From Penicillus capitatus (lineage: Eukaryota > Plantae > Chlorophyta), in NCBI GenBank assembly GCA_965649825.1, contig OZ287696.1, positions 1,159,101-1,223,100 on the forward strand: 64,000 nt of DNA, written 5' to 3'. Below the pieces are notes generated by a model, which was not told where the DNA came from, did no database searches, and saw only the letters and a program-made list of their open reading frames with translations. The position numbers and the translations under genes are program-made. Below are positions 5,842 through 59,980 of this stretch, piece after piece. Positions within the stretch are counted from its first letter, which is position 1. Every line of letters starts with the position of its first letter.

Positions 5842-8800
5842 TCATGATAAACTGTCGACTGTCTTTTTGATCCATTCAGCCACTTCCGACCAATCTCCAG
5901 CCTGGCACAAATTCTTCAATTCCATGAAATTGGCAGTCTGCTGACCCAGTGTCATCTTATTGACGAAAGCAAATTTGTATTTCTTCGCTGTATCTGCATC
6001 GATGGTCTGGCATTCTTCGATGATCTTCGTGATGTGTGTGTACATGTCTGGCAAGTTGTCGCCTTGCTTTTCAGAATCTGGCTCTTTTTCATCTTCTTCG
6101 ACCAGATCTATGACGTTCTTTTGCGATGAATGTTCTTCCTGCTGTGCTGGATGCGTCAGCGGCTTCTCCGTTCCAGTACCAGATGCATCACTGCCTGTGG
6201 TGCTCGGATCGATGACAGTGATATCTGGCGATGTGTGTGAAATGCGATCCGCCGTTGCTGCTGCCGATCGCGCATTCCTCTGCGATTCGTTCGGAAAGAC
6301 TTGGCAGGGATAACCGACAGCCGGTTCTGCTTCGGAAGGATGGGAGTAGTTAACTGGCTGAAGATGATTTGTCCCGCGACCAGCAGGATGTTGAGTAGGG
6401 GCCTGAGATGTGACCAATCGCACCTGTCCGTGTGCATCAGTCACCATATACAGACCTCTGTCTGTTTTCTTCGCCAGGGCATTGACACCGCCACGGATGT
6501 TCAGACGGATGGGTACAGATGGCAAACACGCCGGACGCTGAACACGATGCTGCCTAGGATTGGTTGAGTGGATATACTGTGAAGGGGGCGGTGGTGTGCC
6601 AAACACGTGTCTCTTGTTTCCTGGTGTCTGAAAGGGCTGTCCATGGAGAGCGACGAAACCGGCTGATGTACGAATCATCGGAGCTGCATGGACAGCATTG
6701 GCTGGGATCACAAACAGGCCTCGGATTCGCTGATCTGCGGGAAACCCGGATACAGGGTCACGAATGAGTCCCGCTTCGACCAGCAAACGCCCATCTTGAG
6801 TTTTCTGTAGAATTTTGATTTCAGTGAGATGCTGTGCGTCGGATAGGACATTGGCATGTAAGATCCTTCTCGCTGGAGGGGCCGGAGACGGAGCCGGAGA
6901 AGGACGAATAGCGGCTGCTGGAGGAATATACATAGAAGCTGGTATCTTGGGCAGTTTTTGCGGACCACCTCCAAGTGGAATGGACTGAGAAAAGGAATCG
7001 GCCTAAAGGAAGGCATCCATCATAACCACGCCTGCATGTGACGAGGCAGTTCTTACCACGACAGCGTCTGGCAGAATGAAGACAGCGTAAGAGAGCTTCC
7101 AAAGAGCATTGGATTTGAGCAAGACCAAAATATCTCCAACGGTTAGTCCAATTTCATCTACAAATTGATTCCACACCGTCGCCGAGAATTGACAGTGGTC
7201 TTTTGCGACGGAACAGATGAAGCGAAAGGTCTGTTTGCCGCAAGCGTTGCTCAGTTCAACAGCACGAGGTCCCTCAACATTGTTAGAAGATGCGCCAAAC
7301 CATTCGGCCACCGTGCCTGATCCATCGCCGCCATAAGCAGGAGTGCATAAATGGATGATGCCTGCGCTTACTGGGCAGAAGGACATGTTCTGTTGCAACC
7401 GTAATGTTGGCATGCGTCATTCTGAGCGCCACGGCATTGAGAGCCACTTGCACCCAATCTCTGCTGTCTCTTAACAAGGCGGCCATATTCGGGTCGCAGA
7501 TACGCCTCTCCACTTTCATCTCTTGGCGCTTGACGGGGTCCGATGTCTCTTCCTCGACGTCCATGTCATCATTCTCTTCGCCCTCTGCACTCTGCTCGTT
7601 ATTGTGTCGTATGGGCTGGTCGTGAGCAGGTGCCTTCTCTTTGTCCAGTCCCAGCTCTTCCCAGTCAATACGCTGCAAGAAACAGTCCGCAGGCTTTCTT
7701 CCCCATGATTTGAAAGCTGCCATGGTTGTGGGGCCATCCAGTTTCTGCCGTTTCGATGCAGATCGGCCACGACCGTAGTGATCTCCCACGGAGCATGCTC
7801 TCTGATTATGTGCCATCATCCGAATGAAACTGCTGACTTGTTCGCTGTCTGCACAGTAAAGAAATGTCATCAACTGTCTGTCCTGGATGTAATCGTCCTT
7901 GGGAAAATTCAAGGAGACAATGGACTGACGATTCATCATGGCACGTTTCAGTGTAGCCAAGTCATACGCTCTTGCTGCCCCCTCCAAAGTATCAAATCGA
8001 CCCAGATAATGATATTTCCCACCAAACTCGACTTTTGAGTACGGTACGCCATCCCGCGAGAAATAAACACCTTTCCATTTTTTGCTATCTCTGATGTTTT
8101 TCACCCATGAATTTTGTGTCGGTGGTCCCTTACAGCTAGATGCGACGATGTCTTTCATCTCATCGGCACTGCAGGTTTGCGTTTGAACAGAGCGTCTGTT
8201 GTCCCTCGCGTCCGCAGGTACGGTCACATTACCAAGTTCGTCTTCAAAGCTCATCTTGCATGATTCGATGGTGTTCTGCACTTCTTGCATTTCATCAACT
8301 GCGCCTAAGTCAGGATGCAAATCCCTGAACATGTCAACCAGTTCGTCAAATCTCAGAACGACCATGAGACTAAGAACTCTCTCCAATCTCCCATAGTCTT
8401 CGAGTCTAAAGTTCGTTCGTGCAGTCGAAAGATTCTGTGAATTACTCATGGCACGTTTAAGAGAAGCCAAATCCCACGCCTGTGCTGCAGCAGCAGCTGA
8501 ATGATGAAAACCCAAGAAATGAAAATGATTGGCCGTCTGGATGATGCTGTAGTATACAGAGAGCTTTGAAAGAGCGAACACTCCACGAAAGCGCCCCAGT
8601 AGTTCAACCTCGTCTTTTGCTCGCATCATGTTCCTCGTCTTAAGAAGTTGGTGGATAGGGTTGACCGTGGTACAGTCTATTTCCGGCTCAGATGCCTTGC
8701 TGCGTTCGGAGGTGTCGTCAGGCATCATCTGGCGCTTAGAGGGAGGCAATTCAGTCGACGCAGTACCAGAGACATGCTGCAGGAGCAGCAATCCTTCAAC

Positions 8801-8857
8801 TGCCGGACCTTCTCCGCAATCACTCTTAGCGCTTCCTTCGTCTACACACACGCACAC
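5842..8857 (-). CDS. Transcription factor with two AP2/ERF domains, a B3-like domain and a long Pro-rich C-terminus
   Basis: AP2-1 is RFRGV...FLGFHHSAAAAAQAWDLASLK...NF. AP2-2 is KWKGV...YLGRFDTLEGAARAYDLATLK...LNFP. Introns 7317-7371 (55 nt) and 7003-7056 (54 nt) join ORFs 7283..8857, 7003..7413 and 5842..6933 in frame. The true start is uncertain. Confidence 0.8.
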
Positions 8858-9399
8858 GTCGCTACGTCCCGCGACGTTTGTGCAAAAAAACGTCTCGTTT
8901 GAACGCGACTTGCTTATCGTACGTCAAATTTAGAGAAAAGTTTAAGTCAAAAGGCCTCATGGTGAGTTTTGGGATCGTTACCTGAGGGACAACAGTGTTG
9001 CGTTTCTCGCTCGTCTGTCTTCTCGTCGGTGCTCATAGACTCAGCAGCTTCACTGTTTACCTTTTCTGAGGGTGCGTCCATAGCTGTCTTGGCAGCTCGA
9101 CTTGGCGCTCTTCGATTGAAATAGGTTACCTATATCCAAAAATAAAACCACGTACAAAGAACCGTTAAGTCACAAAGGACGCTAAGAGGAAGGAAGGGTC
9201 GACACAATAGTGGTTTGTGCGTTCGTATGAATTTCGATCCGCAGAGAAGGAGGCACTTACTGAGAAGCTACGCGCGTGGCTGCCCGGGCGAAGCTCCTAC
9301 GCTAAGTGGATACGTTACAGTGAGTCAAACCAAGCATAACCGCTTGAAATGACGACCAAGTAACACGCGAAACGCGGCTCGGTATGAAGTTCAAAAAGA

Positions 9400-12300
9400 T
9401 CACAAAAATCCAGAAATTGTGGTGCTTAGCCGCAGCCCTGACTCAACAAGGAGACCATGTCCGCGGGAACTGAACGGTAAAAAAACAAAACGGTTATTCC
9501 ATCGACGGTCCAAGCATTCCATGAGACCACAGAATTTAGCGTCCTCTGCACCGAACACGTACATCACATCTGTCATCGAGGCAACGAGAGAGCGAATGAG
9601 GGGCTCCATTTTTCCCGTACTCATTCCCACAAGTGCCTTGGCGAGTTCCTCGGGACGAGCACCCCTTTGCCTTCTCTGCAACACATGCAAGTACATGGGA
9701 TGACGTTGACGCAGCTGAGCCCACAGGGCACTGCCTTCATACCATCTCTTCAGAAAACGCTCATAAGGCAGGGAACTTGTTAGGATACCGGCCGTCTCCA
9801 TATCCTGCTGCAGTCGGGCTGCTCGGGTATCAGGGTTTTCAATCCCAGACGTCCCAGAAATGACAATGAGCTTGGGGCAATCCATATGCAACGCCATGTG
9901 CTGTGCTAAACGGCCTCCAAGGGAATAGCCAACGATCGCATGAGGCGTTCTGCCAAACTGCTTAGCAAACGCACAGAGAGCGGCCGAGACACGCTCAAAA
10001 TCGTACATGTCATCATCGGCATGGGCTTCGCCAGGCTGAAGCTGTGTGTTTCCGTGTCCTGGAAGATCCACGGCCACACAGACGCATTGACTGCTTAGGT
10101 GATGCATAATTGGCAACCAGTCATTTGAGTTGCCTAAAAAACCGTGCAAAAATAGCACCACTGGATCATCGATTGAATTCTTGACTTGGCAATAGTGAAA
10201 CACATACACACCGTCTTCAGTGGCAACGGATTTCTGTAACGCCATTTCCTCGACTCGGTCGCTCTCTGGTTTGAATGCCTTGGCCTGTGCGAGCAATATC
10301 TGCCAAGAAGCCTCCAACATGATGCTGGGCTTTCTAAAGCAGTCTCCGTCGACATTCTGAAACCAGTCCACTGTTCCCAGTCCATGACGCGCTGGATGTT
10401 TCTGAATCCCATTCCTCTGTTGTGTGACGGCATTGGATATGGCTGCCAGTTCGCACAGGAAGGAGATACCGACAGGAGTCTCGAATGCAGATGATATGAC
10501 TGTCTTGCGATTCAGCGAAACGCATATCTTCATGATATGCACGAGGCGATCGATAGAGCCCATACAACTCGGCTTGAGGACACAGCTCACCACTCCTGGG
10601 CAGTGCTTAAGGAGCTCGGCCACGTCTGCTGGTCCTCTGCTCGAGGCAATACTCTCATCAAGAGCGACAGGAAGCTGTGTCTTCTCACAGAAGACGGCAA
10701 TGTCGTTCACTCGATTCACAGGTTCCTCGATGTACTCGAGATTGGGACAGGAGAGGTGCTCTGCGAAACGAAGAGCGTGGTCTATGTCCCAGGCTCGATT
10801 CGCATCGAGACGGATACTCAGTCGATCCCCGAATGCTTTGGAGATGCTGCTGATCACGTTGGCCTCCTGCTCTGGGGACTGACCTCTGCCAACTTTGATT
10901 TTGACGGTTTGATATCCCTGTTCAAGCAGATCACGACATCTCTCTATCGCTGTTTCCGCGTTTGAGATGTCTTCCAGAAGTGCATTCGACACGACTTCTG
11001 GATGATCTGCTTCGGGAGATGGACTCCAGAGTTTGTGGAGTGGGCGGCCTTGCATGCAGGAGAAAGCCATCAGCAATGCTGTATCAAAGCCAAAACGAAC
11101 AGTTGGGCTCATATCTGAGTCTTCAATTCCGTACGTATTGGACAACCAGTCACTCAAATGTCCATCCAACAGACATATCTCTCGAGGAACCTACACAGAA
11201 CCCCATCTCCACGATTCCCATGACATTGCTGCGTGTGTATACTTCTTGACCAATGAGTGCTCTTTTAAGGTATCGTAACTGTGGCATGACATCTTGTAAG
11301 GACTCAGAATGGAGCCCATCCAGCGGTGCGATTTCTCCAATCCCTGACCATTCTCCTAAACACTCATGGCCTTCTGTGTCGTCTGTATTGTCGGAATCTG
11401 CGTTCTTTTTCAATGTGATCCTCAACAGGATCCCTTCTCTGAACATTGCGGCGTTCCCTGTTGTTGGTCCCTTTCTCAAAGGAAGAGAAAAATGCTGCCA
11501 TGACAAATCTTTGATCACAGCCGTTTTCATCCGAGTCATGGTCTTGCAGAGATCTACAGCCCGAAGAGCTGCAGCTGCAGAAGCAGCTTGAATCTGCTGA
11601 TGCAGTTCCACGTTATTCTTCCTGCATTCAGAAGTGGGGATGTTGATATGATAATGATATGTGTGACCTGTCTGTGACAACTTCAATCACACAATGTTGA
11701 TGGGACTTCCACGCTGTGTTCAGAGCTTCCTTGAATTCGGTTGGTTTTGTGACGAGATTGTGGGCAACTCCATAAGCTTGGCACAGTGTGGCGATGTTGA
11801 TGTTCTGTGGAGTCGACCACAATGCGTTAAACATTTCCGGCACGACAGCGTGAGCGATGGGTAAGAAATCAAAAATACCGCCGCCGCCATTATTGATCAC
11901 CACGAGCGTCATTGGCGGCCATGCTTCGCTTCGAAGAAAATGCAGTCCATTGCTGTCATGAAAGAAAGAGATATCCCCAATAAGCAATGTCACTGGTTTT
12001 CTCAATCCAACAGCATAGCCTAGAGGACGACAGAAATGAGAAGTGCTTTTGGTCATAGCCCTTACCAATAGCTGCACTGATAACTCCATCGATGCCACTG
12101 GCTCCTCTGTTGGCAGCAACCTTTGCGAAAGGAGCGCCCTTGTGTGTAGCAACGCCTTTTTTACAAGTAACGCCACCAAATATGTCCATATCTCGAATCG
12201 GCATGCCGTTGCCCAGGAAGAGACCATGTCCTGCAGGGAGCAACTGACTGAGAATGAAAGAGACGTAGGGTTCTGTCATGCAGTCCTCGTGTGCTAACGT

Positions 12301-15300
12301 CGTCAGCGACTGCACCAATGAACGCGTCACAGTATGATCGACCGATTTCCATTGGCTCAAGTACATAGCATGATCGCTGTTCACCTCCCATTTTCGATGC
12401 ATCAGCAAGGCATAGATTTGAGGCAGCGAAACGGTCACTTTCAAGGTGACAAGGTGACATGGATCATCTCGCCAGGTGTCTCTCGAGACCTGGATCCATT
12501 CTGTCTGTGGATGCGTCTCTCTGCAACGCTGTAAGAACTGCATGAGTCTCTTGGATGTTAGGTGGCCACTGAACTGGAGAATCACATCTGGCGCGAGTGC
12601 CTCGCACGGCATTGGATCCATGGACAGAATCTGATCCGCAGTGTGGATGTAAGGCCATTCTGCGAGGCGATAGGGATTTTTTAACCCCGATAAAACGTCC
12701 ACGATGCACGGCCACTGAAGACGTTCGGCAATCTCTGCTGCGGCTGTTCGTTCGTTCGGCATCAGCAGTTCCCCAATGATCAACAATCCACGTTTGGCCC
12801 GTTGTACCTAAAGTGCAGAAGGATGCCACGTGACAAGAGCATGTGCCTTTTAACCTGATCCAATAACCGCTCTGTATCCTGCAGGACGCATGCCCCCCTT
12901 GTGAATCTTGTAAAACATTGATCCGATGACAGCCAATCCGCCAACACGCGATCTGTCGGGAGCTTCTGCTCGACTGTCTTTTCAATGGGCTCCAAAGGTT
13001 CATCGAACTGAAAATTGAGATGGACGGGTCCTGGAGGATCCATACAAGCATGACGCACAGCGGCATCCACAGTGGTCAGAAAGGCTCTGGAGATAGAGGG
13101 ACTGTTAGCCTCAGATGGCGGCGGGATATCATGGAAGTATCGTGTATAATCTCCAAACAGCTTCACTTGATTGATGGTCTGATTGCTGCCAGTGTTCCTG
13201 AGATTCGAGGGACGGTCAGCTGTCAGCAACAGCATCGGCACACGGGAAAGGCTCGCTTCGATGACTGAAGGCATGAGATTGGCAGTGGCTGTTCCTGAGG
13301 ACGTAATGATAGGAGCCGGACGCTGCGTCGCCCGAGCGTATCCAAGACTCCAAAAGGCCAGACTTCGTTCATCAATACATGGATAGACATGACAGTTGGG
13401 ATTTATGGCGGCGGCGTAGACAAGGGGCGAAGATCTGGACCCAGGCGCCACGGCAAACGTATGAATACCCAATCGACAGAGCTCTTCGACCAATAGACTC
13501 GCCATCCTGATATTGGCATTTGGAGACGATAGATAGGAGAGGCGAGACGAAAGCTGATGCTTGAAAGGTCGGACCTTGAGATCAAGTTCTTTCCATTCGC
13601 TCAGCATATCTGATTCTTTGACAGTGCCGACACCGGCAAAGAGGGACAGAGTGTGTTTGTTTTTGCCTGTGTCTTTGAAGAGACCAGATCGAATTGCCAC
13701 GATGAATTCTGCCCCTTGACCAGATAGCCAGCCAAAAGGCCCGGCGTAGTATCCTCTATCAAAGAGCTCTGTTTTGGCCAAGATCTCTTTGGCTGCTGTC
13801 TGCGGATGGCCGCACACTGCGGGAGTGGGATGCAAAGCGCTGAGAATATCGAAATCTGAGCGCGATTCTTTTAGACGTCCCCGCAAACGACCGTAGAGAT
13901 GCTGAACAGATGCTCTTCGAATGACACTCTTGTGCACATCCACATCCACATCCGAGCAAATGGTGCGAAGGGTATCGGTCAACCAATTGCGCACCAGAGT
14001 AAACTCAACATGATCTTTTGGATGCCGCATCAGTTCAAGCCCAATCAAGAAATCCTCTCTCAGATTGCCTGCAGCATGCTTGTGAGATCAGCTCGTCCTG
14101 GAGAACAAGACCTTTGGGTCCACGTGGTCGAGTTCCGGCAATAGCTTCGCTGATCACCTGATCGCCATTCCGCCTGTACAGTCTCTCCGGAGTGGAACCA
14201 ACAAAGGTCCCACCTCTTGGCAAACTGAGACAGAATTGATAGGCACTGGGATCGCAGTGCTACAGAAGCATCGTCAGGAACAGACAGTACCATGCTGTGC
14301 ACACTTGTAAATGCTGCAACATTGAATGGGGATAGAGGGTACCCTCGACGTCGAGCTTTGTTCGACGTGCCAAAACGATCTTGGCGAGGTTTTCGTCCGC
14401 ATCGCTGCTCTCCTCCTCTTCAACTGTATTCTGTGCGTTCAGTGCCGCCAGCAAATCATCGAGTCCCTGGCCCATATGTCAAGGAAAGATCTGTCTATAT
14501 CAAATGCACACACCTGCTGTCCAGATTCAAGGCATTCTCGAACAGCTGTCTCTGAATCGACACCACCGAAAAGATCTCCTCTGTGCTTGATGCTTTTGAG
14601 GTTTTCGCATGTGGTCGACACTAATTCCTTCCATTCATCAAGAGAAGGCACTTGAGTTTCTGCCATCCTGTAAACACACTCGTGTCGACACAATTTCGAG
14701 CCACATTCGCACGGGATCTACCACTGCACATGAGGTGCCAGCGTTGTATGTGAGGTGACAGGTGCAACGTCCTGCAGTATGTCGGCGACAACCTTCACTG
14801 CCTCGATGGGTGTCGACATTCCCATGCCACAAAAAGATGATGGACTGGAGAACGTCGCATCCCAAGCAAGTGTGCATACGAGGGTGTTGTGCTCTGGAGC
14901 TTCTATGAATTCCACTGCAGGGATAGAGAACAGATAACTTCCAAACTCTTTCCATTCGTCATCGATGCGTCGCCCGGCGTCAAATCTGCAAAGGATGGAT
15001 GAGGATAGAGATCATACCATCGGTCGATGTTGTTACGCACCGTGTGGCACCGATACACTTAATGGAAGGATTCTGGGGGTCCAAGAATCGGTGGATGTGT
15101 TCAAAGAGGCGTTGATCGGGGTGTTCTCCCTCTCTTCCTTTCCATAACCACGAATGTCCGATGCCACAGAAGACAGATGCATCGCCATCGCCTTCTTGTT
15201 GAAGATCGCACGTGGATTCATCCCTCTGACGGAAGTAGAAACTCATATGGCGTTGACATAGTCGTGTTTGATGCTTGAGCCAATTCAAAGCAGTTTCTCC

Positions 15301-18110: not shown

Positions 18111-19107
18111 TTAGCTTAATTCTGCCAAGACATCTGTCTCCCTGATGACAATGTACTCTGTCTCATCCTCTCCCTAATGTACAAAATGAAGATCTCTTCC
18201 CGTCAGCGATGCGCATGTGCAGCAAGGCAACCTGAAGATCCGTTCCGCTGTATTGCGAGTACAGTATTGTCGATCCGATTGAGACATTTGGAGGCGTCTG
18301 CTTATCATCGACTTTCTTTCCGGGACCAACGCTAACCACCTGCAACACGATGTCCAGATAATATGACACAGGCAGGGAGGGGATGCACTGTTCCAAATGT
18401 TGGCTTTTCCGTTGCCGCCGATGTTAAAAGAACACCTGCGCTCGTTTTTTCTTCGGATTTGGAAACCTGCATGCAGCGAAGCTATACGGCAGGGCGCAGT
18501 GAGATAGATAGATCAGAGGACTTTGACAAGGATGCGATCACCCAGAGGCTTGAGTTTAGAAATCTCTGTTCCTGACATGATGCCGATTACATCTTCCTCC
18601 TGACATCCCAAAAGAGTGAGAAATTTTGCACACTATGTATGTATGCATGCTTTACTTTCAGCAGAACATGAGCAGCGCCGTCAACCGACAAATCCGTCCC
18701 CGAGTACTTTCCGTAGATCACATGATCGCCGACCTATCTCTGCACTCTTACTCAAAGCAGAGATCTATTATGAAGTGTGACTTTGAGTGCGCATCCCTCA
18801 CTGACTCTCGTAATGTCCCCTTGTGTGGATGCTTTCTGTGCCGAGGTCGGCAGCACAAGCCCTCCGGCTGTTTTGATGTCCGCCTCGCGCACCTTTACAA
18901 AGATCCGCTCTCCCACTGGTGTCACCTTCTTAAACTGCACACGATTGACGCATGGATCATTCAGTGCAGAGGTGGGTGGGTGGGCACTTGTTGAGGAAGG
19001 GTCGTGACGGCGGCGGCAACACGAAGACGCGCTCGGCCGAATCGCCCTCGTCGAACCGCATCGCGTTGGCCGATCGAACGTCGCACACATACGCCTTGAC
19101 TGTTCAT
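18111..19107 (-). CDS. CPN20: Plastid 20 kDa co-chaperonin (tandem GroES domains)
   Basis: Transit peptide MNSQGVCVRR..., then TPVGERIFVKV...TAGGLVLP. Second domain VVSVGPGK...ILYSQYSGTD and YIVIRETDVLAELS-TAA. Confidence 0.9.
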
Positions 19108-19179
19108 CTTCTACTGCGGCCTCTAGCAACGTTAACACAAGCCCTAACGCACAAGCACTTCGTACGGCACGAATTGCCA

Positions 19180-21003
19180 ATGGAATCGCGGCCCTTTCGC
19201 ATTGAAGACGGAAACGAGAATATCTGCGGCGCCTGTTTGCGCTCAGGCGTTCTCATTTGCTGCGAGAACTGCCCCGCAGCATTTCACCCGGAATGCGCAG
19301 GGTACCGCGACATCAACAGCGTCCCTGACGGAGACTGGTTCTGCTTTCTCTGTTCCCGCAAACTTGGCCTCCCTTTCATCACGGGAACGACCTTTCCAAA
19401 GTCTGTGGGTGAACAAGTGATGGTTGCTTGCGACGAACACAACGAAGTCTTTGCCAAAGCGGTGGTCACAGATGCAAGCGCGACGCATGTGACGCTCAAG
19501 AGACATGCCCGAAGTCGGACATATGCCGTTAACGATGCAAGACTATGGCGTGGGACAACAGACGATGCATCGTGGACGCAAACCCCCGAAGGGGAATATC
19601 GTCCCAACAGTCGTGCGTTTGAGATCGACTATCAGCAGATCGCATCGATGGAGGAGGAAGCGACGGATTCGATGCCGTCGAATCTCATTGAAGGCGGCTA
19701 TGCGCATTTCTTGCACTTTAAGAAAAGAGAACCGAAAGAGAAGCATTTCTTGGACCTCCTGACGCATTTTTGGAAGGTCCATATCAAAGCAGAAGACATA
19801 CAATGGCCTTCCTTTGGCTACATCGTGCCCCTCGCCGATCTCTGGTGCGTTTCTGTTTGAGATATAGATGGACATTTGCCTTCATAAGCGTCGTGCGTCT
19901 GTGTTAGGGATTGCGTCCAGAAACGGGGCGGATTTCAGACAGTCTGCGAACGAAATGCCTGGGACGAGATTGTGGAAGAGATGATGCCAAATCATGATCT
20001 GGTGCATTTTGGCTTCGTACTCAAACATATGTTTCAGACGGTGCTGTTGGATGTGGAGTCGAATGGCGGCGTGGAGGCGATGGAAATCATGAAAGCATAC
20101 CGACCTGTTCCTGAAGGCAGAGGCGATTCCCTAAACGAAGGGTCCGTCGTGGAAGGCAATGCGAAGAAACGGCGAAGGAGGTCTCGGAAGAAACGGAGAC
20201 TGCCGATCGCGGACGAATGGATTTCGTCACCGAGGGTGCCGCCGCCGGAAGACGTGTTAACTCCAACAGGACCCGCCATTCTGCAGACCTGGCCACAAGT
20301 ATACTCTGCCAGTCGTGCTGTACAGGAATACAGAACAGCGATCGGAATCGTTTCCCTTACAGAAATGGCGCGAAATCTGAACGTCGGGGACAAAGTGGAT
20401 GTCCGTCTCTATAGAGATTCGAGTTTGGGACCGTGGAGAGCCGCGCGGATCATGACCATCGCGACGGCCAGTGCGTTCGAAGGCTATCGACGTTTTCGCG
20501 TGAAGTTCAGTAAATCGAAAGATCCCGATCAGTTTCCGTCGCTCCCCGAGGAATGGGTGACGCTTTTGGCTCGACCCAGTGCATGGGGTACAACTCTGTC
20601 CAAACCGTCCGTTCTTGTCCGCTCCCCTCTAAAACCATACTTTCCACCTGTCAAATCATCCATCACACTGACACTCCGTGTTGGAGACCGCGTGGAAGCG
20701 TGGCTGCACAACGGCTGGTGGCCGGCAGCAATTTTGAGCATCAAAGACGATCAAGTGCTCCTCCAAGGCGATGTGATTCCGCTGGGAGAAGGTCTAAAAT
20801 GGATCAGCTCGTTGAGTTTCCTCCGTCCAGTGCCGGTGAGAGAAGAAGACGGTTACGGGATGATCGAACCACTGGACATGGACGAGGACATCTATCCTAA
20901 AGATATGGAGAAGAGACTAAACGTGACGGTCGACAAGACCATCGACGGGCATCTGATTCTGAGCTTCAAACGCCTGGACCAGAGACCTCAGAGAACTCGA
21001 TAG
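19180..21003 (+). CDS. Chromatin protein: PHD finger, ARID-like domain and Agenet/Tudor-like domains
   Basis: PHD CGAC...LICCENCPAAFHPEC...DWFCFLC. Splicing gives ARID-like LADLWDCVQKRGGFQTV...AWDEI...LKHMFQTVLLDVE. C-terminal VGDRVEAWLHNGWWPAAI is Agenet-like. Confidence 0.8.
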
Positions 21004-39082: not shown

Positions 39083-41867
39083 ATGGAGATCGAATCGATC
39101 GACGACGAAGAGGTCTCGAAGATCGCGTTCACGGCTGAATGCTCATCAGAGGTGACTGCTCGTCTTCCGGATCGGTGTCGCAGCTGGGCGATGACGCGAT
39201 CGGCTGTTCGACAGGACGCAGAGCATCCCGTGTTCGAGCTGCTGCGCCAGACTAAAGAGACGCGCGGATGGCAGTCCGCAAAGTCGACAAGCGCGTCGCT
39301 GATGTCTCTGCGATGGAACGTTGGTTGCAGGAACTGTGCGTATCCGCAAGAGCTCCTCCTGCGCTTCGACCGTTGCGTCCGAATCAGACAGATCCAGCTG
39401 CTCTGTCACGAATTCAAAGTCCGGGTCTGCAAGTGTCGCCGCAGTTGGTGACATGCGGTCGCAGATTTCGTCGAGAATCGAGCTGAGCGTGGGGACGGTT
39501 GTTCGGCAGGACGAAGAGGACGTCCTCGAGTGGACGAAGCTCGGAAGTCTGTCGTTCGACGCCAACGAGCGAAGCCGATTTCTGGCCCGAGAGCTCAAGA
39601 GCGTGCACGTGACGGCGGAGGGAGATGCGTTGAGGCTTCGGCTCTTCGACTGCCACGCAAACAGACTCAACGCGGACCGCCAAGTCTGTCGACGCACTCG
39701 GTGGATGATGGCGGACGGCGCTCGCCTTGCAGATCGGCGTCGTCGCTTTGAACGTTCTGGGGATGTACGTCGAACACGCGTCGTCGACTGAGGAAACGGA
39801 CGGCGGTCGACGACGTGGAGGCGGCGCTGAAGAAGACGCGGTGGCGTCGGCGGACCCGGCTGTCGGACAAGACCTGGACTCGACAACGCTCCCCGAAGTG
39901 CACAGGCTGCAAAGGTGCGACAGAACGAGGGAGACCGCACTCCACGCGTACGCTCGATCTCTCGCCAGGCTCAAGGAGGTCGCCGTCGCAAACGAAGACT
40001 ACGACGAAGCCAAGAGGCTCAAGCATCGACTCGATCGCATCCGTTCCGTCGGGACTCGATTGGCCGCGCTCGAGAGGCAGAAGCGGCGAGCCGTGGAGGC
40101 CGAAGACTACGACCTGGCGAAGCAGCTCAAGGAAGAGATCCGGCGCATCCGGGAAGGGTCGTCGATGGACGGCGCCTCCTCGGTGGACGCGTTCGACGAG
40201 GGAGCGATCCAGGCTCTGACCGATGTCGACCTCCCGCACTCAGGTAGCTCCCGGAAAGGATGTGAAGGGGCGAGACGATGTCCTTCATCGCAGCGGAGCG
40301 CGTCCGGGGACGGGAGGCTTCGGTCGAGTCCACGGCTGCTCGGGCGGCGAACCGCGTGCCCGACTCCCTCGCCGGCTTTCGAAGCCAGCACGACGATTAC
40401 GATGAGCGCGCCGTCAAGGGAAGAGGCGGAACAAGCGACGTCGAAATCGATTCGCCTCCTGCTTACTCTCTCCCCGAGTCGCCGGCCTCGGCCGCGCCCG
40501 ACGCTCCGGAAGGATTCCCTCCAGGTCTCCCGTCGCCGGAGCCCCTGGCGGATGCGCATGCCAAATCCGCCCAGTCGCTCGAGCAGTTCGCCGGAGAGTT
40601 CGTCGCCCGATGCTTCTACTCCAGAAACTGGCACCTACGAGAGGCGTCACTGGTCTATCTGCAGGGCCACGCGGAGGAGCTGGCGCAGCCGGGTCAGGAG
40701 AGGGAGGGGTTCCGTCTGCTCTGCCAGGTCGCGGTGCGCGGACTCGGTGACAAGGTCGCCAACGTCTTCCTCGCCTCCGCCTCGTTCATCCGCACCATCG
40801 CGACAGGTAACATGACTCTCTCCAGGGATCTGCAGTTCGCGACGGCCGAGTTTCTGCCGATCCTCGTCGGGAAGCTCGGCGACACGAACCCTCGGATTCG
40901 AGACGCGGCGCACGAGTCGGTCCTGATGCTGGCGCGACTCAAGGACGGCGCCGTCAAGAACCACACAGGACTCTTCATCAGTCCCGTCAAGAAGCAGAGC
41001 GCCTGGCGTCCCGTCCTCGGCAGACTGGAGCTGGTCTCGGACCTGGTCGAGGTCATCGGCGTCGGCAAGGGAGGCTCTGCGGGTTTCGACGTCGACCAGT
41101 TGATGTCGTTCGTCGCTCGGGCGTACACATCGCCGAACGCGAGCGTACGGACCGCGGCCATCGGCCTGACCGCCAGGCTCGCGACCGTCGTCGGGCCCGT
41201 CGTCAAGAAATACGTTCCGGGCGACGTGAATCCCAAGGTGCGGCAGCAAGTCGATCAGGAGATCGACTTCGCGCTCGGAGAGACGAGTCGGCAGGCGTCG
41301 CCGGCCCGACCCTCAAGACGGAGTCCAGGGAGCGACGCGAGGACGCCCACCACCACCGGTAAGCCGACGCGGGCGTCTTCCGTCGACGCCCTCTGTCGCT
41401 CATCAGGCAGCCAGCTGTCGCCGAGCTCCTCCGCGGCGCAGCTCGAAGAGAATCCGGCCGTTCTCGAGTCTGCGCTGCGGAAACAGGAGCAGCTGCTGGG
41501 CGACGACCATCCAGATCTGGCCGAGGTGCTCACGAATCTGGCAACGGCGTACACGCAGCGGGAGGAGTTCGACAAGGCCCATCCTCTGCTGAAACGCGTG
41601 CTCGACATCAACGAAGCGCACTTTGGATGCGATCACTCGAACGTGGCGCACGCTCTGACGGACCTCGCTGTCTTTCACATGGAACAGGTGCAGAGAGTCG
41701 GTCGGCGGAAGGCAAAACGAAAGACGCCTTTTGTTGCCGGACAGGGCCAAGACGACGAGGGACGTCCGCTTCTGGAGCGAGCGCTGCTCATCCAAGAGAA
41801 GAATCTCGGCGCAGACCATCCTGACGTCGTCGCCATCAGAGATGTCCTTGCCGCGGACGACGAATAG
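39083..41867 (+). CDS. CEP104: CEP104/FAP256-like ciliary-tip protein (jelly-roll, coiled coil, TOG) with C-terminal TPRs
   Basis: N-terminal GWQSAK|NCAYPQELLLRF...IQLLCHEFK|ISSRIEL...LGSLSFDANERSRFLARELKSVHV...Q|IGVVALNVLG. Also AVANEDYDEAKRLK, a TOG (FYSRNWHLRE, KLGDTNPRIR) and kinesin-light-chain-like TPRs (LGDDHPDLAEVLTNLA). Confidence 0.88.
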
Positions 41868-42743
41868 GCAGACACAGAAATAGCTAGACCCGGCGGCGCC
41901 ACTCTCTTGCACCTCAAACGCCGCGGCCGTCCGTTCGCGCGAAGTCGAGTACGGTGAACGAGAAGTCATCGGATGTTTAAGCTCGTCGCTGTATACAATC
42001 TCCGGGTCATCAGCGTTGTTTGAGCGAGATGTGCTTTGCGATCGCAAACGCAAGGCCGTTCGATCGAACGTCTTTCGACACACGCCGATCTCCTCGTTCG
42101 TTCGTGTCCCTCGGTGGATACGAACGAATTCACCGACAACGTCTGAGGACGAACCCGGATCAGGTGCATCAGTATTGACAATCAAGCTTTGGCAGTTTTG
42201 TTAGACAGATATCTTTCGCCGATGCATTGATCTAATCGTCAGTATCTTTGATTGGACGGGCACGTGTCTTTCCGCTCCGATGATAAAGACCGTCATCCTC
42301 TAACATACAAGGTTTAGCAGGAATGTTCTGAACACCAGCAATCGAATGTCCTAGACAGTATATCCTACCGCCAAAGAGTAATGCGAGATGATACGGGCAA
42401 GCACGGATCTCTCTTTTTCGTCCTTGAGCTGTGTGTGTTCAGGAGTATCCATCTGTGACGAAGGCCTCTCTCCCACACTGGGTTGGTGCCGAACCTGCAT
42501 ACTCGTTCATGAATTTTCTGTAGTCTTGGATGTTCTTTCTTCAGTGTTAAATGACACTCGGCAAGAGATGCCATTGGGGTGGCAGTAGTATACAATCGAG
42601 CTTCTTTGTGGTAGGTACTCTGAGTCCTGCATGTTTAAACCGAGTCGATCGGACACACCTCTAGCAACCTGGACTGGGATGCATAAGGGACGTCTTATAC
42701 TGAATTTTCGACGCGTTCGTTATCGCGAGCCACATCGTCTACT

Positions 42744-46600: not shown

Positions 46601-47947
46601 GAGGGCAGGAGGAGAGATTCGACTCACTATCGAAGGCGCACGCGGAAGGAGTGCCAAATGGCTGGAGTCGGCTTCCGATCTCTATCCAGCAGATCCTTCT
46701 TGGTGGGCGAGTGCGTCGAAAGGCAGCGGCTTGGACAGCGGTAGACGAAAATCGTCAAGAGAGCGGCGACCGGGAAGCGTTTCTGCTGGAAAAGATAAAC
46801 GCAGCGAGAAACGTCCAAAACTCGAAGAAACGAAAAAGCAATACGATTCAGAAACGCCCAGGGTTTTGACCGCAAATGACAGTCGCAACCGTGTGAGGCA
46901 GTTAGTGATGGCGACGTAATCACCAACGACGAAGCCGCCGAGCAATAAGCAAGCGCTAGACTCGACTGAAACGCTTCCAGCATCCAAATCTCCTGCTGTG
47001 GAACGGACTGTGCCGTTATCCAGTCACATGTCGAGGAATGTTATTTCTCGAGGATCATGCAGAAGTGGCGGTTATGACTGGCACATGAGAGGCTGCATGC
47101 AAAATCGAACCGGATACCCATTTCTGGCGTTTAGCAGATCATGTTCATAGAAATCACCCTGTGGACTTATACCTATTGCATCTCAGTACTGGTTTGAGAC
47201 TCGCTGTCATACAAGTATCAAAGAAATGTAACTATGTGCTCTCTACCTTCGAGTGATCAAAGGGCGAGGTAAGACCCTCTCAAGGATGTCTTCATCAGAA
47301 TCGCGATCAATCAGTTGACAGCACGAGTTGTTGATTTCTCATCTGAGCACTCTTCTGATGATACGACAATGGCCAACACAGATTGATTTAGGATGGTATG
47401 AATTGGTTATTGGTTTGATGGTGATCACCTGGTGTGCGTGTCGAAATATTGGCGCGTAGCTCTCTGAAACGATCTGGCGAACTCTCTACCTACTTGGGCG
47501 CCGACCTAACCTCTATAATCCGTAAGACGGTCTCGTTTAAGGATTCTTGCTTTGCTCGGGCCGGAGATTTCCAATGGATCTTCTCTTGACAGTATGTCGT
47601 CAGTGACAGACACGAGAGACGGCGATCAAGCGAGTCGAGATTTCGCCTTGACAGTTGCCTTTCTTTCGCGAGAAAAGACGGCTGCACAAAAGAGGCGTCG
47701 TCTAATTGGTGACCGTGGTTCAAGGAATGCAGAGCAAGAAACCACTGCGCAGCTCGCAAAGGAGGTTCTTCGTACGATCGGGCGCGTAGAAGACGATCGC
47801 TGTAAACTCATTCCGAGAACAGTTTCGTCGAGTAACAAGCGTTCCCTCTGTTCATCTGACGAAAGCTCCGCCAAAGAAACGCGTCAGCGTGAGCAACAGA
47901 CAAATGCAATTTCACTCGGAAACTTCTCGCACGCCAAAACGTTCTAG
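46575..47947 (+). CDS. Possible hypothetical multi-exon gene; poorly resolved
   Basis: Protein-like ORFs 46575..46919 and 47552..47947. The intervening exon structure could not be established. Confidence 0.28.
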
Positions 47948-50900
47948 AGCTTCCAGAACGGACTGGAGACCGTCCCCTGCACGCAGAATTTTGTACTGGC
48001 CCGATGACGACAGATCCACCACGGTCGATCCCAGTTTCGATCCTGAGCTTCGGCCACCGTCGAAGACGACGGCACAGTCCGGCCAGAGCTCCTGAAACTC
48101 AGAAACGCACACACTTGACGGATCTCCGCTCCTGTTGGCGCTCGTCAGCGCGATCGGTTTGCGCAGCCGACTGCACAGAAGGCGAGCGAACTCGGCATCC
48201 GGTACCCGCACGCCTAGAGATGCAGCCGAAACGCGAGATGGCACCGTGGGTTCCATCAGAACCTACCGATCGAAGGGAGACCTGGATTGAGCTCCGGTGC
48301 GAGGGGAGACGTCTCCTTCCGTCGGAGGACCGCCGTTACGGGTCCAGGAAGCAGGGCATCCAGCAACCCGTCGGGCAGGTGATGCACCTCGCACAGTCTG
48401 GCGACATCTTGAACCTCGGCCACGCACACGGCCAGCGGCACATCCGTCGAACGACCCTTCGTCGCATACAGGGCGTTGACGGCGTTTCCGTTCCCTGCGT
48501 CCGCCGCCAATCCGTAGATCGTGTCCGTGGGCAGGCCTATGCGGCGCAGAGGATGAGAGTGGAGAACGAGAAGCGAGATCCGGACCGACGAGTCTGCCTC
48601 TCTCGAGTTCCTCGACGCCTCTGTCGACGTGTTCAACGACGGCTGGAAGGATTCGTCCCTCGGCGTTGTCTTCGCCACCCGGAGAGCCCTTCCTCTCGTC
48701 TTTGAAACGCATATCCACGACGACCTGCGGTGCCGACAGTGGTTTCTCAGCTACGACACTCGGTACAGAGATGGCCACTCACCGCCAGATGATCGGACGG
48801 GTACACCTTGGAGGGACACGGCTTCCCTATCCTCTCGGGAGAGGGTATGGGAATGTCCCGTTCGACGTCCACGAAGCGCGGCTCGTACCAAACGTAGTCC
48901 AGCAGTCCTTTGAAGCCTTCAGTGAAGTTCGAGTAGGGCGTTTCCAGACCTGACACACAGCCGAACGTCTGTTAGACGTGATCGAACGAACAGCTTTCGA
49001 TCGTTCGTTCCCTACTCATCGCGCTTCGAAGCTCGAACGGCGCCTCGACGTCGATGCCTTCGACTGGATCCCCTTCGCCCTCGTCTGCGCTCTCGTACAG
49101 CCGCGACACGTCGTCTTCTGGTGTCATCTGGGCGGAGAAACAGACGGAGTCGGTGTCGAGCCGAGCAGAGGCGATCACCTTGGTCCAGCGGAACTTCCGG
49201 CACTCGCTCCACTCCCAGTGGTCCTTCCTAAGGCGGCCGTCGCGCAGCAGCGTCAGTGCGGCTGCGTCCACAAAGAGCGTTGCGGCTTCTGCATCGCCGA
49301 GAGCCAGACTGCATACCGTCGACTTTCCCGGTGGCCAGATCGACGCTGCTGTTCAGATCGCCGACCAGCACAAGCTGCGCACTCTCTTCAACGGATCGCG
49401 CCCAGACGCTCGCCCGGTGGAGCATGTCGAGGACGTGGAAGACGCGTATGTGCTCTCCGTGCGAATGAGAAATGAGATGCGTGTTCACCACGCAGAGCGG
49501 CTTCTCGCCTTCTCCGACCGGCTTCAGGAGGACCGCCTGGCCAATCGTCACCACGTTCTTGAGCGCCGTGCTCATGTTCTTGCACCCGGCGATCATCTCG
49601 CGAAAGGGCATGAGGTGTGCGGGAAGCTCGCCGTTCAGGACTTCGTTCATGTTCAGGCGGACATGCGCAGCAATCTGAGTGCATGCGATGCAAGGTTCGC
49701 GGCGGCGCAATCGCAGACGGACGCACCTCGAATCGCGATCGGCGGGCGAAGAGGGCCTCTCCCTCTCTCGTGGTGCCGCTTTTCTGCGCAAAGACGCCGG
49801 CGAATCCTACAGACACGACAGATGGAGGAGAGGGACCCTTCCGTTGACGTGACCTTCGGCCTGGAGATGGGGACGGTAGTAGGTGTCGAAGGCTTTCTGG
49901 TCGCACTCCTGCAAGCAGACAATGTCTGCGTGGTAGCCGAGCAGTTCTTTGAGCACAAGCTGCTTCCGCACGTCGATGTCGAGATCGCTGACAGAACTCA
50001 GCGTCAGTCTCAAAAGACAGGGGGCGAGGGCGCGCCTGGGGCTGCAGTATCCGAAAACGCTCTTCGCGTTCGGCCTCGAAACGTAGGAGTCGGCGAGGAC
50101 GTTGTAGGTGACCACGCGGAAGGACGGGGACTCTAGTGTCCGAGGCGTCAGCTCGTGTCGGCCGTCTCCGGACGCCTTCTCCCTTCCGGGAGCCACGGGA
50201 CCTGTCGACGGACGACACGTGCGTCTGTGCCGAGCGAGGAGGAAACGAACCCTGTTCGGCGAAACGCGACTCGCCGTGGACAGACGCTCCTTCTTCTGCT
50301 CCTTCGACGTCTCGGGCCACCGGCGTGCACTCGACTCCCAGTAAACGACCCACGTCTGGCGGTGCCGGAGTGTAGACCCTCTCTGTGGCAGCTTCCAACT
50401 TCGTCCACGACGTGCCTATCAACAGAATGCGATCTCTTCCTGACTGCCCCGCTAAAGTGAGCAACTTTTAGATGTCCTGGTGAACCACTGCCACAGACAG
50501 GCAGATTCGTCGGCGAATTCGAGCTGCACAAGACCCAGGTCGGCAGCAGTCCGGAAACGAACGCGGGCGCACTTCGCAGAGCGGGAAGACAGGGTGTCCG
50601 GCGATCGGCCTTTCGTTTAGACACATCTGGAATGGAGAAATGGAAGACGAAACGCGGACAGGCCTGGCTCACGTTCATGACGGTGGGCGGATTCGTCACG
50701 ACCTCGTAGCGCTTGTCGCCTGCGATCAGCCACCTCGCTCTTCGCCACGCACGCTCGTTCGTCACTGCTTCGTCGACCAGACTGCAAGAATCGCCACCCT
50801 CTGCGAGACGGGTGGATCGGACGGGCAGCAACGCACGTCGCTTCGGAGTCGGACGCATAGAGAGCCACGGTGACCGGTTGTTCTTCGACCCCGTCACACT

Positions 50901-51346
50901 CTTCCTGACCGGCTCGCTTGTTCCTTCCCTTCTCTAGCATCCAACTGGCTCGTTCTCTGGAGTTGGCTTGGCGGCGGCGTCTTACTCTTGTCGGAGCGGA
51001 GGCTCAGTCGGAGTCGATGCAAGGATCGGCTCAGCTCCTCTCCCTTGGGTCTGCCAACACACATCTGTTCTGCCATGGACTCCGTGCGATCGAGGGGGAC
51101 CGGTTGAGCGTCCGCACTCTGTCGCGGATGGTGAGGGTGATTGTCAAGTTCTCTTCGGCGTCGGGAATGCGCACGACGGCCTGGTCGCAGACACGCGTGA
51201 TCGAAGGACCGGACACTCCTCGAGCGCACTTTCTCTGCGCTGCTGCCAGACATGTTCGGCGCTGCGCCGAGTGCGAGGGACGCTTTGAAGAAACGCGGAC
51301 GGAAATCGCGGCGCAGTAACGTCAACGGCGAAAAGGGGGCGTGCAT
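47912..51346 (-). CDS. PDE12/CCR4-like EEP phosphodiesterase fused in frame to YrdC (threonylcarbamoyl-AMP synthase), with a transit-peptide-like N-terminus
   Basis: EEP motifs FRVVTYNVLAD, DIVCLQE, VNTHL, GDLNS, GLLDYVWY and PSDHLA. Intron 48725-48782 leads to VVVDMRFK...GRLV|GLPTDTIYG, KGR, PGPVT, GVRVPD, TSANRSG, DGG and STVVD. Confidence 0.9.
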
Positions 51347-58801: not shown

Positions 58802-59980
58802 TTAATAAGGCGCTTCCAGTCTGGAAGTGTTTCTGCTGTCATAATTGTCTAATTTGAAGCTGTTCCAATCGGCAGATGTCAATCCTCGCTGCATCATAGC
58901 CAGAACCGTCGCCATCTGAGAATAGGTCACACTATTGATTAACCCTTCCTGCAGCAAGACATATGTAGACTGAAGACGAGAACTTATTACCGTACAACAG
59001 GAGTACCTGCACGCGAAATGGCCTCCCTCCTTCTGACAGTTTCACCAATTGGTGTGTGTCTCTGACGGGGACCTTCGTTAAATCTTCAATGCCATCTTTT
59101 TTGATGATCTCCTGAATCGCCGCGTGGACGTTGTCGATTTTCATGTATCGACTTCTGCCTGTTCCCAGAAGACAATTCCTTGCCAGCCACTCGAAGTCCA
59201 TTTCTTTTCCATGGAAGGCAGCACTGGCCAAGTACGATAACACGGTTGCCGTTTTGAGATTGCGCTCTTTTGCGATCGCCTCGACGTCAAGTCCTTGTGT
59301 CCAGTCTTCATGCGCCCGTTCCGCTGTCTTTCTCAGGTAAGAATCTACGACGACCCTCTCTCCAGAAGTTTGGACTCTCTCTGCAGAAGCAGGAGGTTGA
59401 TCGAATTGAAAGCTCTCATCAGTCAGGAACGCAAAATCGCGGACAATAACGTTGACCCGTCCCTGGTAACTACTCAGTGTTCCTTGAATGACGATCTTGA
59501 CTCCCTTCTGGACATGTTGACGCACTTGCTTCGCCGCAAAATCGAAAAACACAGTCTCGAAGTAACCGTAGCTTGTCTCTTTCTTGGATGATTCGCGCGG
59601 AACAGCAAGAGTCATATGGGCAAAAGGACTTCCGTCTCGTGAACTTCTTTCCTCGGGGGTATCCATCGCAAACCCGCTGAGTGTTACGGTATTGGTCATC
59701 TGGGACTCAAAGTTCTCGAATCGCGGAGGAGGAACGAGTTCGCTCTTGATCTCTGTTTCGACGGCAGGCTTAACATTCTGCTTTGCACCGATCGTGGATC
59801 GGCGACTAGGCCATGTACGCTGAACGGCATCACTGATAAAGAAGAAGGCTGAAGAGACGGAGGGTGCTGCACCTGAGAACTGCTGCTGGCGGACACCGAT
59901 AGCCTCGATGGTCCGCGTAGGTGGGTCCGCGTCGCTCGGATCGCGGCATTTCTCGGAACGTGACGCAGCAACATGTGCAT
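58802..59980 (-). CDS. Organellar single-stranded DNA-binding protein (SSB OB-fold) with a C-terminal HTH_40-like domain
   Basis: Transit peptide; NTVTLSG...PEERSSRDG...MTLAV...VFF...AKQV...QKG...IQGTL; then WTQGLDVEAIAKERNLKTATVLSYLA and a final exon with VTYSQMATVLAM. Confidence 0.8.

Follow-up and report, generated by a model that had tools for sequence, protein, structure and literature searches.

Organisation of the fusion gene

The stretch of DNA analysed here, termed the window, comprises 64,000 nucleotides of the Penicillus capitatus assembly GCA_965649825.1 (contig OZ287696.1, positions 1,159,101 to 1,223,100 of the forward strand), and positions are numbered from its first letter. 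The minus strand carries, at 51346-47912, one nuclear gene that encodes a single fused polypeptide once all introns are spliced, in which a PDE12-like nuclease continues into a YrdC/TsaC domain. From the N- to the C-terminus the product comprises a presequence-like extension, a PDE12-like N domain, an EEP nuclease, a 16-residue linker and YrdC/TsaC. The gene model was assembled by hand from homologues and splice signals and has the following parts:

51346-47912, minus strand: whole fusion gene, 18 exons and 17 introns, product of 851 residues
51346-51230, 51180-51101, 51050-50986, 50933-50837, 50781-50673, 50626-50573, minus strand: exons 1 to 6
50523-50466, 50415-50251, 50201-50036, 49987-49854, 49806-49727, 49674-49317, minus strand: exons 7 to 12
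49261-49179, 49127-49016, 48949-48783, 48724-48586, 48536-48267, 48213-47912, minus strand: exons 13 to 18
50626-50251, minus strand, exons 6-8: PDE12-like N-terminal Ig-like domain, residues ~151-232 (PF21171)
50201-48783, minus strand, exons 9-15: EEP catalytic domain as far as PSDHLA (PF03372)
48536-48267 and 48213-47912, minus strand, exons 17-18: remaining YrdC/TsaC domain (PF01300)
47914-47912, minus strand: stop codon TGA of the fusion gene
50035-49988, minus strand: intron 9, GC-AG, 48 nt, GCGCGC...GTCAG, in frame and stop-free

All 17 introns span 46-66 nt; 16 display GT-AG borders and one, intron 9, is of the GC-AG type. A Pfam scan of the spliced product placed PF21171 at residues 151-232, PF03372 at 279-613 and PF01300 at 654-831. 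The same spliced frame carries PF01300 (E=4.7e-45) and PF03372 (E=3.7e-13), in agreement with an earlier note on this DNA, which had proposed a spliced, in-frame fusion of PDE12-like and YrdC parts. The shared frame with both Pfam matches, the PDE12 alignment described below and the uniformly short introns place the observation of the fusion far beyond chance.

A close counterpart of the gene lies on a 96.9-kb metagenome contig from ENA, termed L001, whose locus is orthologous to the fusion gene (78% DNA identity over 3.9 kb). All 17 of the 17 intron positions are retained in L001, with intron lengths that differ by non-multiples of 3, and the spliced open reading frame (ORF) is intact, encoding 852 residues with 84% amino-acid identity to the window protein. 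Identity between the two loci amounts to 82.9% in exons (3 gap columns) and 66.6% in introns (48 gap columns). The ratio of non-synonymous to synonymous substitution rates (dN/dS, Nei-Gojobori) is 0.136 overall, 0.134 for EEP and 0.157 for YrdC; both halves are under purifying selection.

Intron 9, being in frame, stop-free and GC-AG, is readily misread as coding by annotation. A single exon 9/10 with a 16-residue insertion was considered and rejected. The counterpart in L001 measures 50 nt, and this 2-nt indel would break the frame if the region were coding, which identifies it as an intron; the site is also occupied by an intron in Ostreobium and Apatococcus, and removal of intron 9 gives back the spacing of the homologues (YCSPSDLDIDVRKQ versus YCDKKYLSLDYRKQ). 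There is a related lesson for annotation, as the fusion gene gets split by an ORF caller without an intron model, exemplified by the L001 fragment P0002. The long antisense ORFs at 48004-48705 and 49054-50136 on the plus strand gave no Pfam match and are an expected by-product of a GC-rich coding strand.

The PDE12-like nuclease half

The first 623 residues of the product display human PDE12 (PDB code 4z0v) as their top structure match (E=5.5e-59), as against only 1.3e-20 for CNOT6L. The alignment with human PDE12 opens at query residue 145 and is far stronger than those with CNOT6L or nocturnin (~1e-20). The N-terminal Ig-like domain matches PF21171 (PDE12-like_N) with E=4e-10 and 40.1 bits, the cut-off being 27. 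The EEP motifs TYNVLAD, CLQECD, VNTHL, VGDLNS, LDYVW and PSDH were all found, each aligned with its human PDE12 counterpart. At the end of this half, the segment psdhlavvvdmrfk aligns to the final residues of the PDE12 chain in 4z0v, PSDHIALVCDLKWK, such that VVVDMRFK pairs with the C-terminal LVCDLKWK of PDE12; the fold is complete only after splicing of the 58-nt intron that separates PSDHLA from VVVDMRFK. In the AlphaFold2 (AF2) model of the Ostreobium orthologue the corresponding VVFDLAW (602-608) forms a strand with a predicted local distance difference test score (pLDDT) >90, the linker (617-630) falls below 50, and YrdC lies mostly at 82-96 per 10-residue block, with a predicted template modelling score (pTM) of 0.63 for the model. 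Both the PDE12 alignment and this model bear out the suggestion of the earlier note that the terminal EEP strand is encoded in the exon that follows the intron. By its catalytic motifs, its N-terminal Ig-like domain and its terminal strand, the nuclease half is assigned to the PDE12 type.

The YrdC/TsaC half

The C-terminal half contains the YrdC motifs PTDTIYG, K-G-R (KxR), IGVRVPD, S-A-N (SxN) and GSTVVD, and its PF01300 match covers profile positions 2-178 of 178 (E=4.7e-45); the Pfam scan of the spliced product gave no match to the SUA5 domain PF03481. The C-terminal 212 residues score 137.1 bits with TIGR00057 (L-threonylcarbamoyladenylate synthase), above the equivalog cut-off of 123.2. 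Structure matches of this half comprise MTH1692 (3e-25) and Sua5 (2e-22), with YciO structures at ~5e-4. KxR and SxN are invariant across the YrdC domains of 8 diverse fusion proteins (alignment A1), and this signature distinguishes YrdC/Sua5 from the YciO subfamily (PMC3223725). A YciO- or HypF-type identity of the domain was ruled out by KxR/SxN, the TIGR00057 score and the ranking of PDB matches. The YrdC half is ~50% identical to the stand-alone YRDC group of land plants (AT5G60590-type; Klebsormidium, liverworts, grasses) and therefore most likely represents the alga's orthologue of plant YRDC; among the 120 matches listed in a YrdC-domain profile search, nearly all were land-plant YRDC or unnamed fragments. 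Taken by its sequence, the C-terminal domain is a Tcs1-type YrdC/TsaC.

The junction between the two halves

The region in which nuclease and YrdC meet comprises the following elements:

48782-48725, minus strand: junction intron (intron 15), 58 nt, phase 0, GTGAGT...CGCAG
48724-48586, minus strand: exon 16, terminal EEP strand, linker and YrdC start, stop-free
48724-48701, minus strand: terminal EEP strand VVVDMRFK, aligning with the C-terminal end of PDE12
48700-48653, minus strand: linker DERKGSPGGEDNAEGR, 16 residues
from 48652, minus strand: YrdC start ILPAVVEHVDRGVEELERGRLV, within exon 16

Exon 15 ends GAT CAT CTG GCG (D H L A) at 48783 and the donor GTGAGT begins at 48782; after the acceptor, the codons GTC GTC GTG GAT ATG CGT TTC AAA encode VVVDMRFK. 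The four positions given by the earlier note (donor 48782, acceptor 48725, retained-intron stop 48747 and ATG 48712) are all exact on the minus strand. Exon 16 continues in frame across the introns at 48585-48537 and 48266-48214 into GLPTDTIYG...TSANRSG...GSTVVD, the two introns of the YrdC part cutting at GRLV|GLPTDTIYG and LPSIG|VRVPD, respectively. The linker shares only 31% identity with that of L001, yet its length and frame are equal in the two.

Intron 15 interrupts the EEP domain after the catalytic His motif and before the last β-strand, and its location inside the nuclease domain means that it was not left behind by the fusion itself. An intron also occupies this PSDH(L/I)A|VV site in Apatococcus lobatus (Trebouxiophyceae, ~1.1 kb; 12542 to 13679 of locus L006) and in Ostreobium quekettii (Bryopsidales, ~0.4 kb; 13714 to 14108 of locus L007). 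In L001 the junction intron measures 56 nt versus 58 nt in the window, with 60.7% identity and 8 gap columns. Intron 15 is an ordinary, ancient spliceosomal intron, neither fusion seam nor switch, and its removal is required both for the complete nuclease fold and for translation of YrdC.

The first intron within YrdC lies at GRLV|G in the window and in L001, and seven codons downstream, after PTDT(L/I)YG, in Apatococcus and Ostreobium. The shifted positions (L006 14654/15882; L007 14293/14595) reflect either intron sliding or independent gain.

Breadth and history of the fusion

A word-seeded search returned 27 clusters at 90% identity with both Pfam domains, and an exhaustive search of 1.84 billion representatives, for which the query was a profile of 21 database fusion proteins, returned ~35 clusters at 50% identity that cross the junction. 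The named carriers include Ostreobium quekettii (CAD7697151.1; UniRef A0A8S1J0W7, ‘Threonylcarbamoyl-AMP synthase’), Bryopsis sp. KO-2023 (GMH35852.1), Ulva mutabilis (UM024_0071), Apatococcus, Elliptochloris, Trebouxia, [Myrmecia] bisecta, Auxenochlorella (gene symbol TPD1; KAL6780190.1), Raphidocelis subcapitata (GBF89998.1) and, as a EukProt entry, the haptophyte Diacronema lutheri. Several fusion proteins are labelled ‘Threonylcarbamoyl-AMP synthase’ in UniRef, and the JGI label is ‘2',5'-phosphodiesterase’. The search for this architecture across chlorophytes that the earlier note had suggested thus finds many fused proteins in databases; by the same token the novelty of the fusion, which that note had made dependent on its not being broadly annotated in green algae, is refuted. 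Both domains are well known and the fusion is already in public protein databases, while the family is uncharacterised in the literature: searches on both domains, t6A (N6-threonylcarbamoyladenosine), PDE12 and TPD1 found no paper describing a PDE12-like/YrdC fusion, and the t6A reviews that list other YrdC fusions mention no phosphodiesterase or exonuclease partner.

Several members of the family are encoded without introns. The genes of the metagenomic loci L002/L003, L004 and L005 measure exactly 3 x (aa + 1), so that their fusions of 905, 842 and 947 residues are each one uninterrupted ORF, and the partial fusion genes on the short JGI contigs L008 and L009 are likewise one uninterrupted ORF, with no poly(A) tail on the contigs. 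A single intron-less fusion ORF typifies the compact picoeukaryote genomes in the family.

The best full-length matches of the window protein are fusion proteins, at 37-44% identity, so that it groups with named members of the family and not with stand-alone PDE12 or YRDC. In a neighbour-joining tree, which is rough, distance-based and without support values, the neighbours of the window and L001 proteins are Bryopsis, Ostreobium and Ulva, at 39-44% identity. On this sequence evidence the window gene is a diverged orthologue within the chlorophyte fusion family. Linker length in the family ranges from 16 to ~70 residues. The nuclease occurs without YrdC in Chlamydomonadales (Volvox, Chlamydomonas eustigma, Sanguina), and the nesting of Volvox among fused Chlorophyceae in the rough tree suggests a secondary split or loss. 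The Diacronema lutheri entry (P0238/P0392; EukProt EP00963 P004313) is a full-length fusion of 823 residues, and P0232, P0236 and P0239 carry the same GDLNS(E/Q)P variant as this protein; the entry represents either a fusion beyond green algae or contamination.

N-terminal extension and second methionine

Ahead of the first conserved domain the product displays two further elements:

51346-51254, minus strand: N-terminal extension MHAPFSPLTLLRRDFRPRFFKASLALGAAPN, 31 residues, Arg-rich, one acidic residue
51253-51251, minus strand: conserved second Met, eight residues ahead of the first conserved domain

From its composition the extension looks like an organelle presequence. Its ORF is kept in L001 with a mixture of synonymous and non-synonymous changes (dN/dS 0.28), and comparable Arg/Ser/Ala-rich extensions are present in many homologues. 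The organelle targeting that the earlier note had envisaged therefore has a presequence-like extension to draw on, targeting itself being judged by eye. An internal Met 1-16 residues ahead of the first conserved domain occurs in 20 of the 25 homologues with an extension of at least 28 residues (among others P0005, P0007, P0018, P0020, P0027, P0073, P0223, P0226 and P0230), and 16 of 21 shorter gene models start at most 16 residues from the domain start, counts that are not phylogenetically independent. Yeast Sua5 reaches mitochondria and cytosol through two AUGs (PMC5951830); by analogy, initiation at the second Met may add a cytosolic form of the fusion protein.

Proposed function and weight of the evidence

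Both halves are probably active, because their catalytic motifs are intact and each is subject to purifying selection. Human PDE12 clears mitochondrial tRNAs and 16S rRNA of spurious poly(A) (PMC5544427, PMC9181182), and YRDC makes threonylcarbamoyl-AMP (TC-AMP) for t6A at tRNA position 37 (t6A37), acting in cytosol and mitochondria (PMC5951830, PMC7102964). By likeness to these enzymes, the PDE12-like half would rid organellar non-coding RNAs of spurious 3' oligo(A) and the YrdC half would make TC-AMP for t6A37. Fusion would secure equal amounts, co-expression and co-targeting of the two activities, and their shared location is probably an organelle, reached via the presequence. A genuine PDE12-like/YrdC fusion gene of a chlorophyte family, with an ordinary ancient junction intron and two probably active, co-targeted halves, is the explanation in which we place high confidence.

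Several points weigh against this explanation. The presequence was called by eye, and constitutive splicing is deduced from conservation. The second Met is also present in EEP-only homologues and is thus not specific to a need of YrdC. The EEP loops of the window and L001 proteins (NTHLISHSHGEH and GDLNSSVDLATGK) diverge from those of most family members. The nuclease-only genes of Chlamydomonadales show that at least one lineage can do without the fusion. Finally, the pTM of 0.63 and the disordered linker give no sign of a fixed domain interface, which argues against tight channelling.

Across most chlorophyte classes the fusion joins the first t6A enzyme to a PDE12-type organellar RNA deadenylase, and it constitutes a testable hint at cooperation of both activities in organellar tRNA maturation. 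A coupling of tRNA 3'-end clean-up with t6A synthesis is a plausible hypothesis. A direct hand-over of tRNA between the domains is possible, although the disordered, length-variable linker and the moderate pTM do not indicate it. In its strongest form, which we consider unlikely, the fusion would be the only TC-AMP synthase in these algae, serve organelle and cytosol via the second Met, and directly link 3' deadenylation of organellar tRNA to t6A37. If this were true, the fusion would be a ‘Rosetta-stone’ record of a functional link, in which t6A37 might, for instance, be reserved for tRNAs whose 3' ends are clean, and a like link would be expected between the separate PDE12 and YRDC of human mitochondria.

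Alternative explanations

In the alternative that survives best, possible if somewhat doubtful, the fusion is real and entails no mechanistic coupling. YrdC would be the general, possibly the only, TC-AMP synthase riding on a PDE12-like gene; it would serve cytosol and organelles, with TC-AMP diffusing to KEOPS and Qri7, and the benefit would be at most shared expression and targeting. Consistent with this, the YrdC half is closest to the single-copy YRDC of plants, for which AT5G60590 is the only Tcs1 listed in Arabidopsis (PMC4615747), and human YRDC is mainly cytosolic (PMC5951830). The disordered linker of ~16 to ~70 residues, the pTM of 0.63 of the Ostreobium orthologue and the loss or splitting of the fusion in Chlamydomonadales point the same way. 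Against it, the fusion persists in Trebouxiophyceae, Ulvophyceae, Sphaeropleales, unidentified picoeukaryotes and the haptophyte entry, a breadth that suggests selection for keeping both domains together, and both partners act in human organellar tRNA maturation (PMC5544427, PMC7102964). This alternative overlaps the favoured explanation of a genuine, co-targeted fusion, which is compatible with coupling or its absence.

Far less probable is the splicing switch put forward by the earlier note, in which regulated retention of the 58-nt intron would toggle between the fused protein and two free ones, a PDE12 ending VSGHLCTECRS and a YrdC initiated at ATG 48712. The intron-retained frame does read VSGHLCTECRS followed by TGA at 48749-48747, an ATG is located at 48712-48710, 35 nt downstream of this stop, and L001 also meets an early in-frame stop on retention (P0002 ends PSDHLAVISSI); however, 58 nt of random sequence can be expected to contain such a stop by chance. 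The ATG is replaced by CTA (Leu) in L001, and among 127 fused homologues the position is occupied by L in 90, F in 29, V in 4 and M in 2, so that L or F in 119 of the 127 identifies it as a hydrophobic strand residue and not a start codon. The truncated nuclease would be without its terminal core strand. Translation of YrdC as a downstream ORF behind >620 codons would be poor, and nonsense-mediated decay would probably act on such a transcript. The junction intron is, in addition, the least conserved segment (60.7% identity, with indels), and it is missing from the loci L002-L005, L008 and L009, where the fusion is an intron-less ORF and a splice switch is therefore impossible. With no conserved YrdC start and a poorly conserved intron, the switch is not upheld. 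The annotated Auxenochlorella isoforms point the same way, as all are fused and vary only near the C-terminus: the TPD1 products (P0367-P0372; 904, 899 and 877 residues) diverge only after ...VAVTEFQ near the YrdC C-terminus, one isoform losing 5 residues and one running into a different tail, which would cost it the GSTVVD motif. Alternative splicing in the family, if any, seems to affect the YrdC end and not the junction.

That the fusion is a gene-model artefact, with adjacent PDE12-like and YrdC genes linked by a chance open frame, is scarcely credible: an intron-unaware ORF caller gave a separate EEP-only product of 422 residues in L001 (P0002) and the EEP-only gene of Chlamydomonadales stops just past the terminal strand (P0030), but P0002 is explained by read-through of introns by the ORF caller, the 16 codons between EEP end and YrdC start contain no stop and no conserved Met and are too short for a terminator, a promoter and a presequence, the linker frame and length are kept in L001, six independent metagenomic loci have both domains in one uninterrupted ORF, and ~35 clusters at 50% identity cross the junction.

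Neighbouring genes

The gene upstream of the fusion ends in an exon at 51894-51391 (minus strand) whose stop, 51393-51391, lies 44 nt ahead of the fusion ATG at 51346; this exon has a sub-threshold PPR-like match (PF13041, E=0.015, 15.8 bits versus a cut-off of 30). The 44-nt spacing is conserved in L001, and the 3' untranslated region (UTR) of one gene and the promoter/5' UTR of the next must consequently be extremely short if they do not overlap. The two loci are not collinear. In L001 a block with an ML-domain (E1_DerP2_DerF2) gene and TRM13 (8641-12132) follows directly after the 3' end of the fusion, and in the window this block lies on the other side of the fusion gene, at 58865-55385; one breakpoint in order falls at the end of the 3' region of the fusion gene, ~47581.

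Elsewhere in the window, 9400-14048 (minus strand) holds neighbouring long ORFs with Chorismate_bind and TPP_enzyme_N and with MR_MLE_C and alpha/beta-hydrolase domains, which constitute a PHYLLO-like multi-enzyme gene (MenF/MenD/MenC/MenH) of a kind that typifies organisms with plastids. The region 39369-41973 (gene 40278-41867, plus strand), the most GC-rich part of the window (64%), encodes a CEP104-like protein with TOG and TPR and is 83% identical to L001 14793-17438; the presence of such a homologue hints that the cell has centrioles or flagella. A 255-residue ORF at 58932-59699 (minus strand) combines SSB (PF00436) and HTH_40 (PF14493), and its product may be an organelle-type single-strand DNA-binding protein. 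The ORF at 7283-8857 (minus strand) has a weak AP2 match (E=1.7e-4, below cut-off), and ORFs at 18952-21003 (plus strand) display PHD-finger and Agenet domains; these are probably chromatin or transcription factors unrelated to the fusion. Neither tRNA genes nor Rfam families turned up when the window was scanned for them.

Comparison with known systems

Human PDE12 (2',5'-phosphodiesterase 12; PDB codes 4z0v, 4zkf and 4z2b) displays, like the window protein, an Ig-like N domain followed by EEP, with aligned catalytic motifs. This mitochondrial deadenylase stops at the terminal strand, whereas the window protein goes on into YrdC. Likewise, YRDC/Tcs1 proteins (human YRDC, Arabidopsis AT5G60590, E. 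coli TsaC) share with the window protein a YrdC fold without a SUA5 domain, although plant, animal and bacterial YRDC/TsaC are stand-alone proteins of 190-300 residues with their own presequence, in contrast with the window YrdC, which follows a nuclease within one chain and lacks its own start. Yeast Sua5 (Tcs2) serves two compartments from two in-frame AUGs (PMC5951830), an arrangement comparable to the presequence and conserved internal Met of the window protein, where alternative initiation is a hypothesis; Sua5 differs in its extra SUA5 domain and in having no nuclease.

YrdC-type adenylate-forming domains are known in other fusions, where their partners act in the same pathway or on the same substrate class. 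They include TsaC-HemK of Mycoplasma genitalium (MG259; PMC4615747), the modular enzyme TsaD-TsaC-SUA5-TcdA (PMC10484737; PDB code 8ide), and HypF and TobZ, which combine YrdC-like and Kae1-like domains; in none of these is the partner an EEP nuclease, unlike in the window. The closest likeness is to the other chlorophyte fusion proteins, which present the same domain order and the same PSDH(L/I)A-VVxDLxF...PTDTxYG junction, many of them also with a presequence followed by an internal Met. Within this family the window gene differs in its introns of 46-66 nt, compared with 0.4-1.1 kb in Ostreobium and Apatococcus, and its protein in belonging to the shortest linker class (16 residues) and in its divergent EEP loops.

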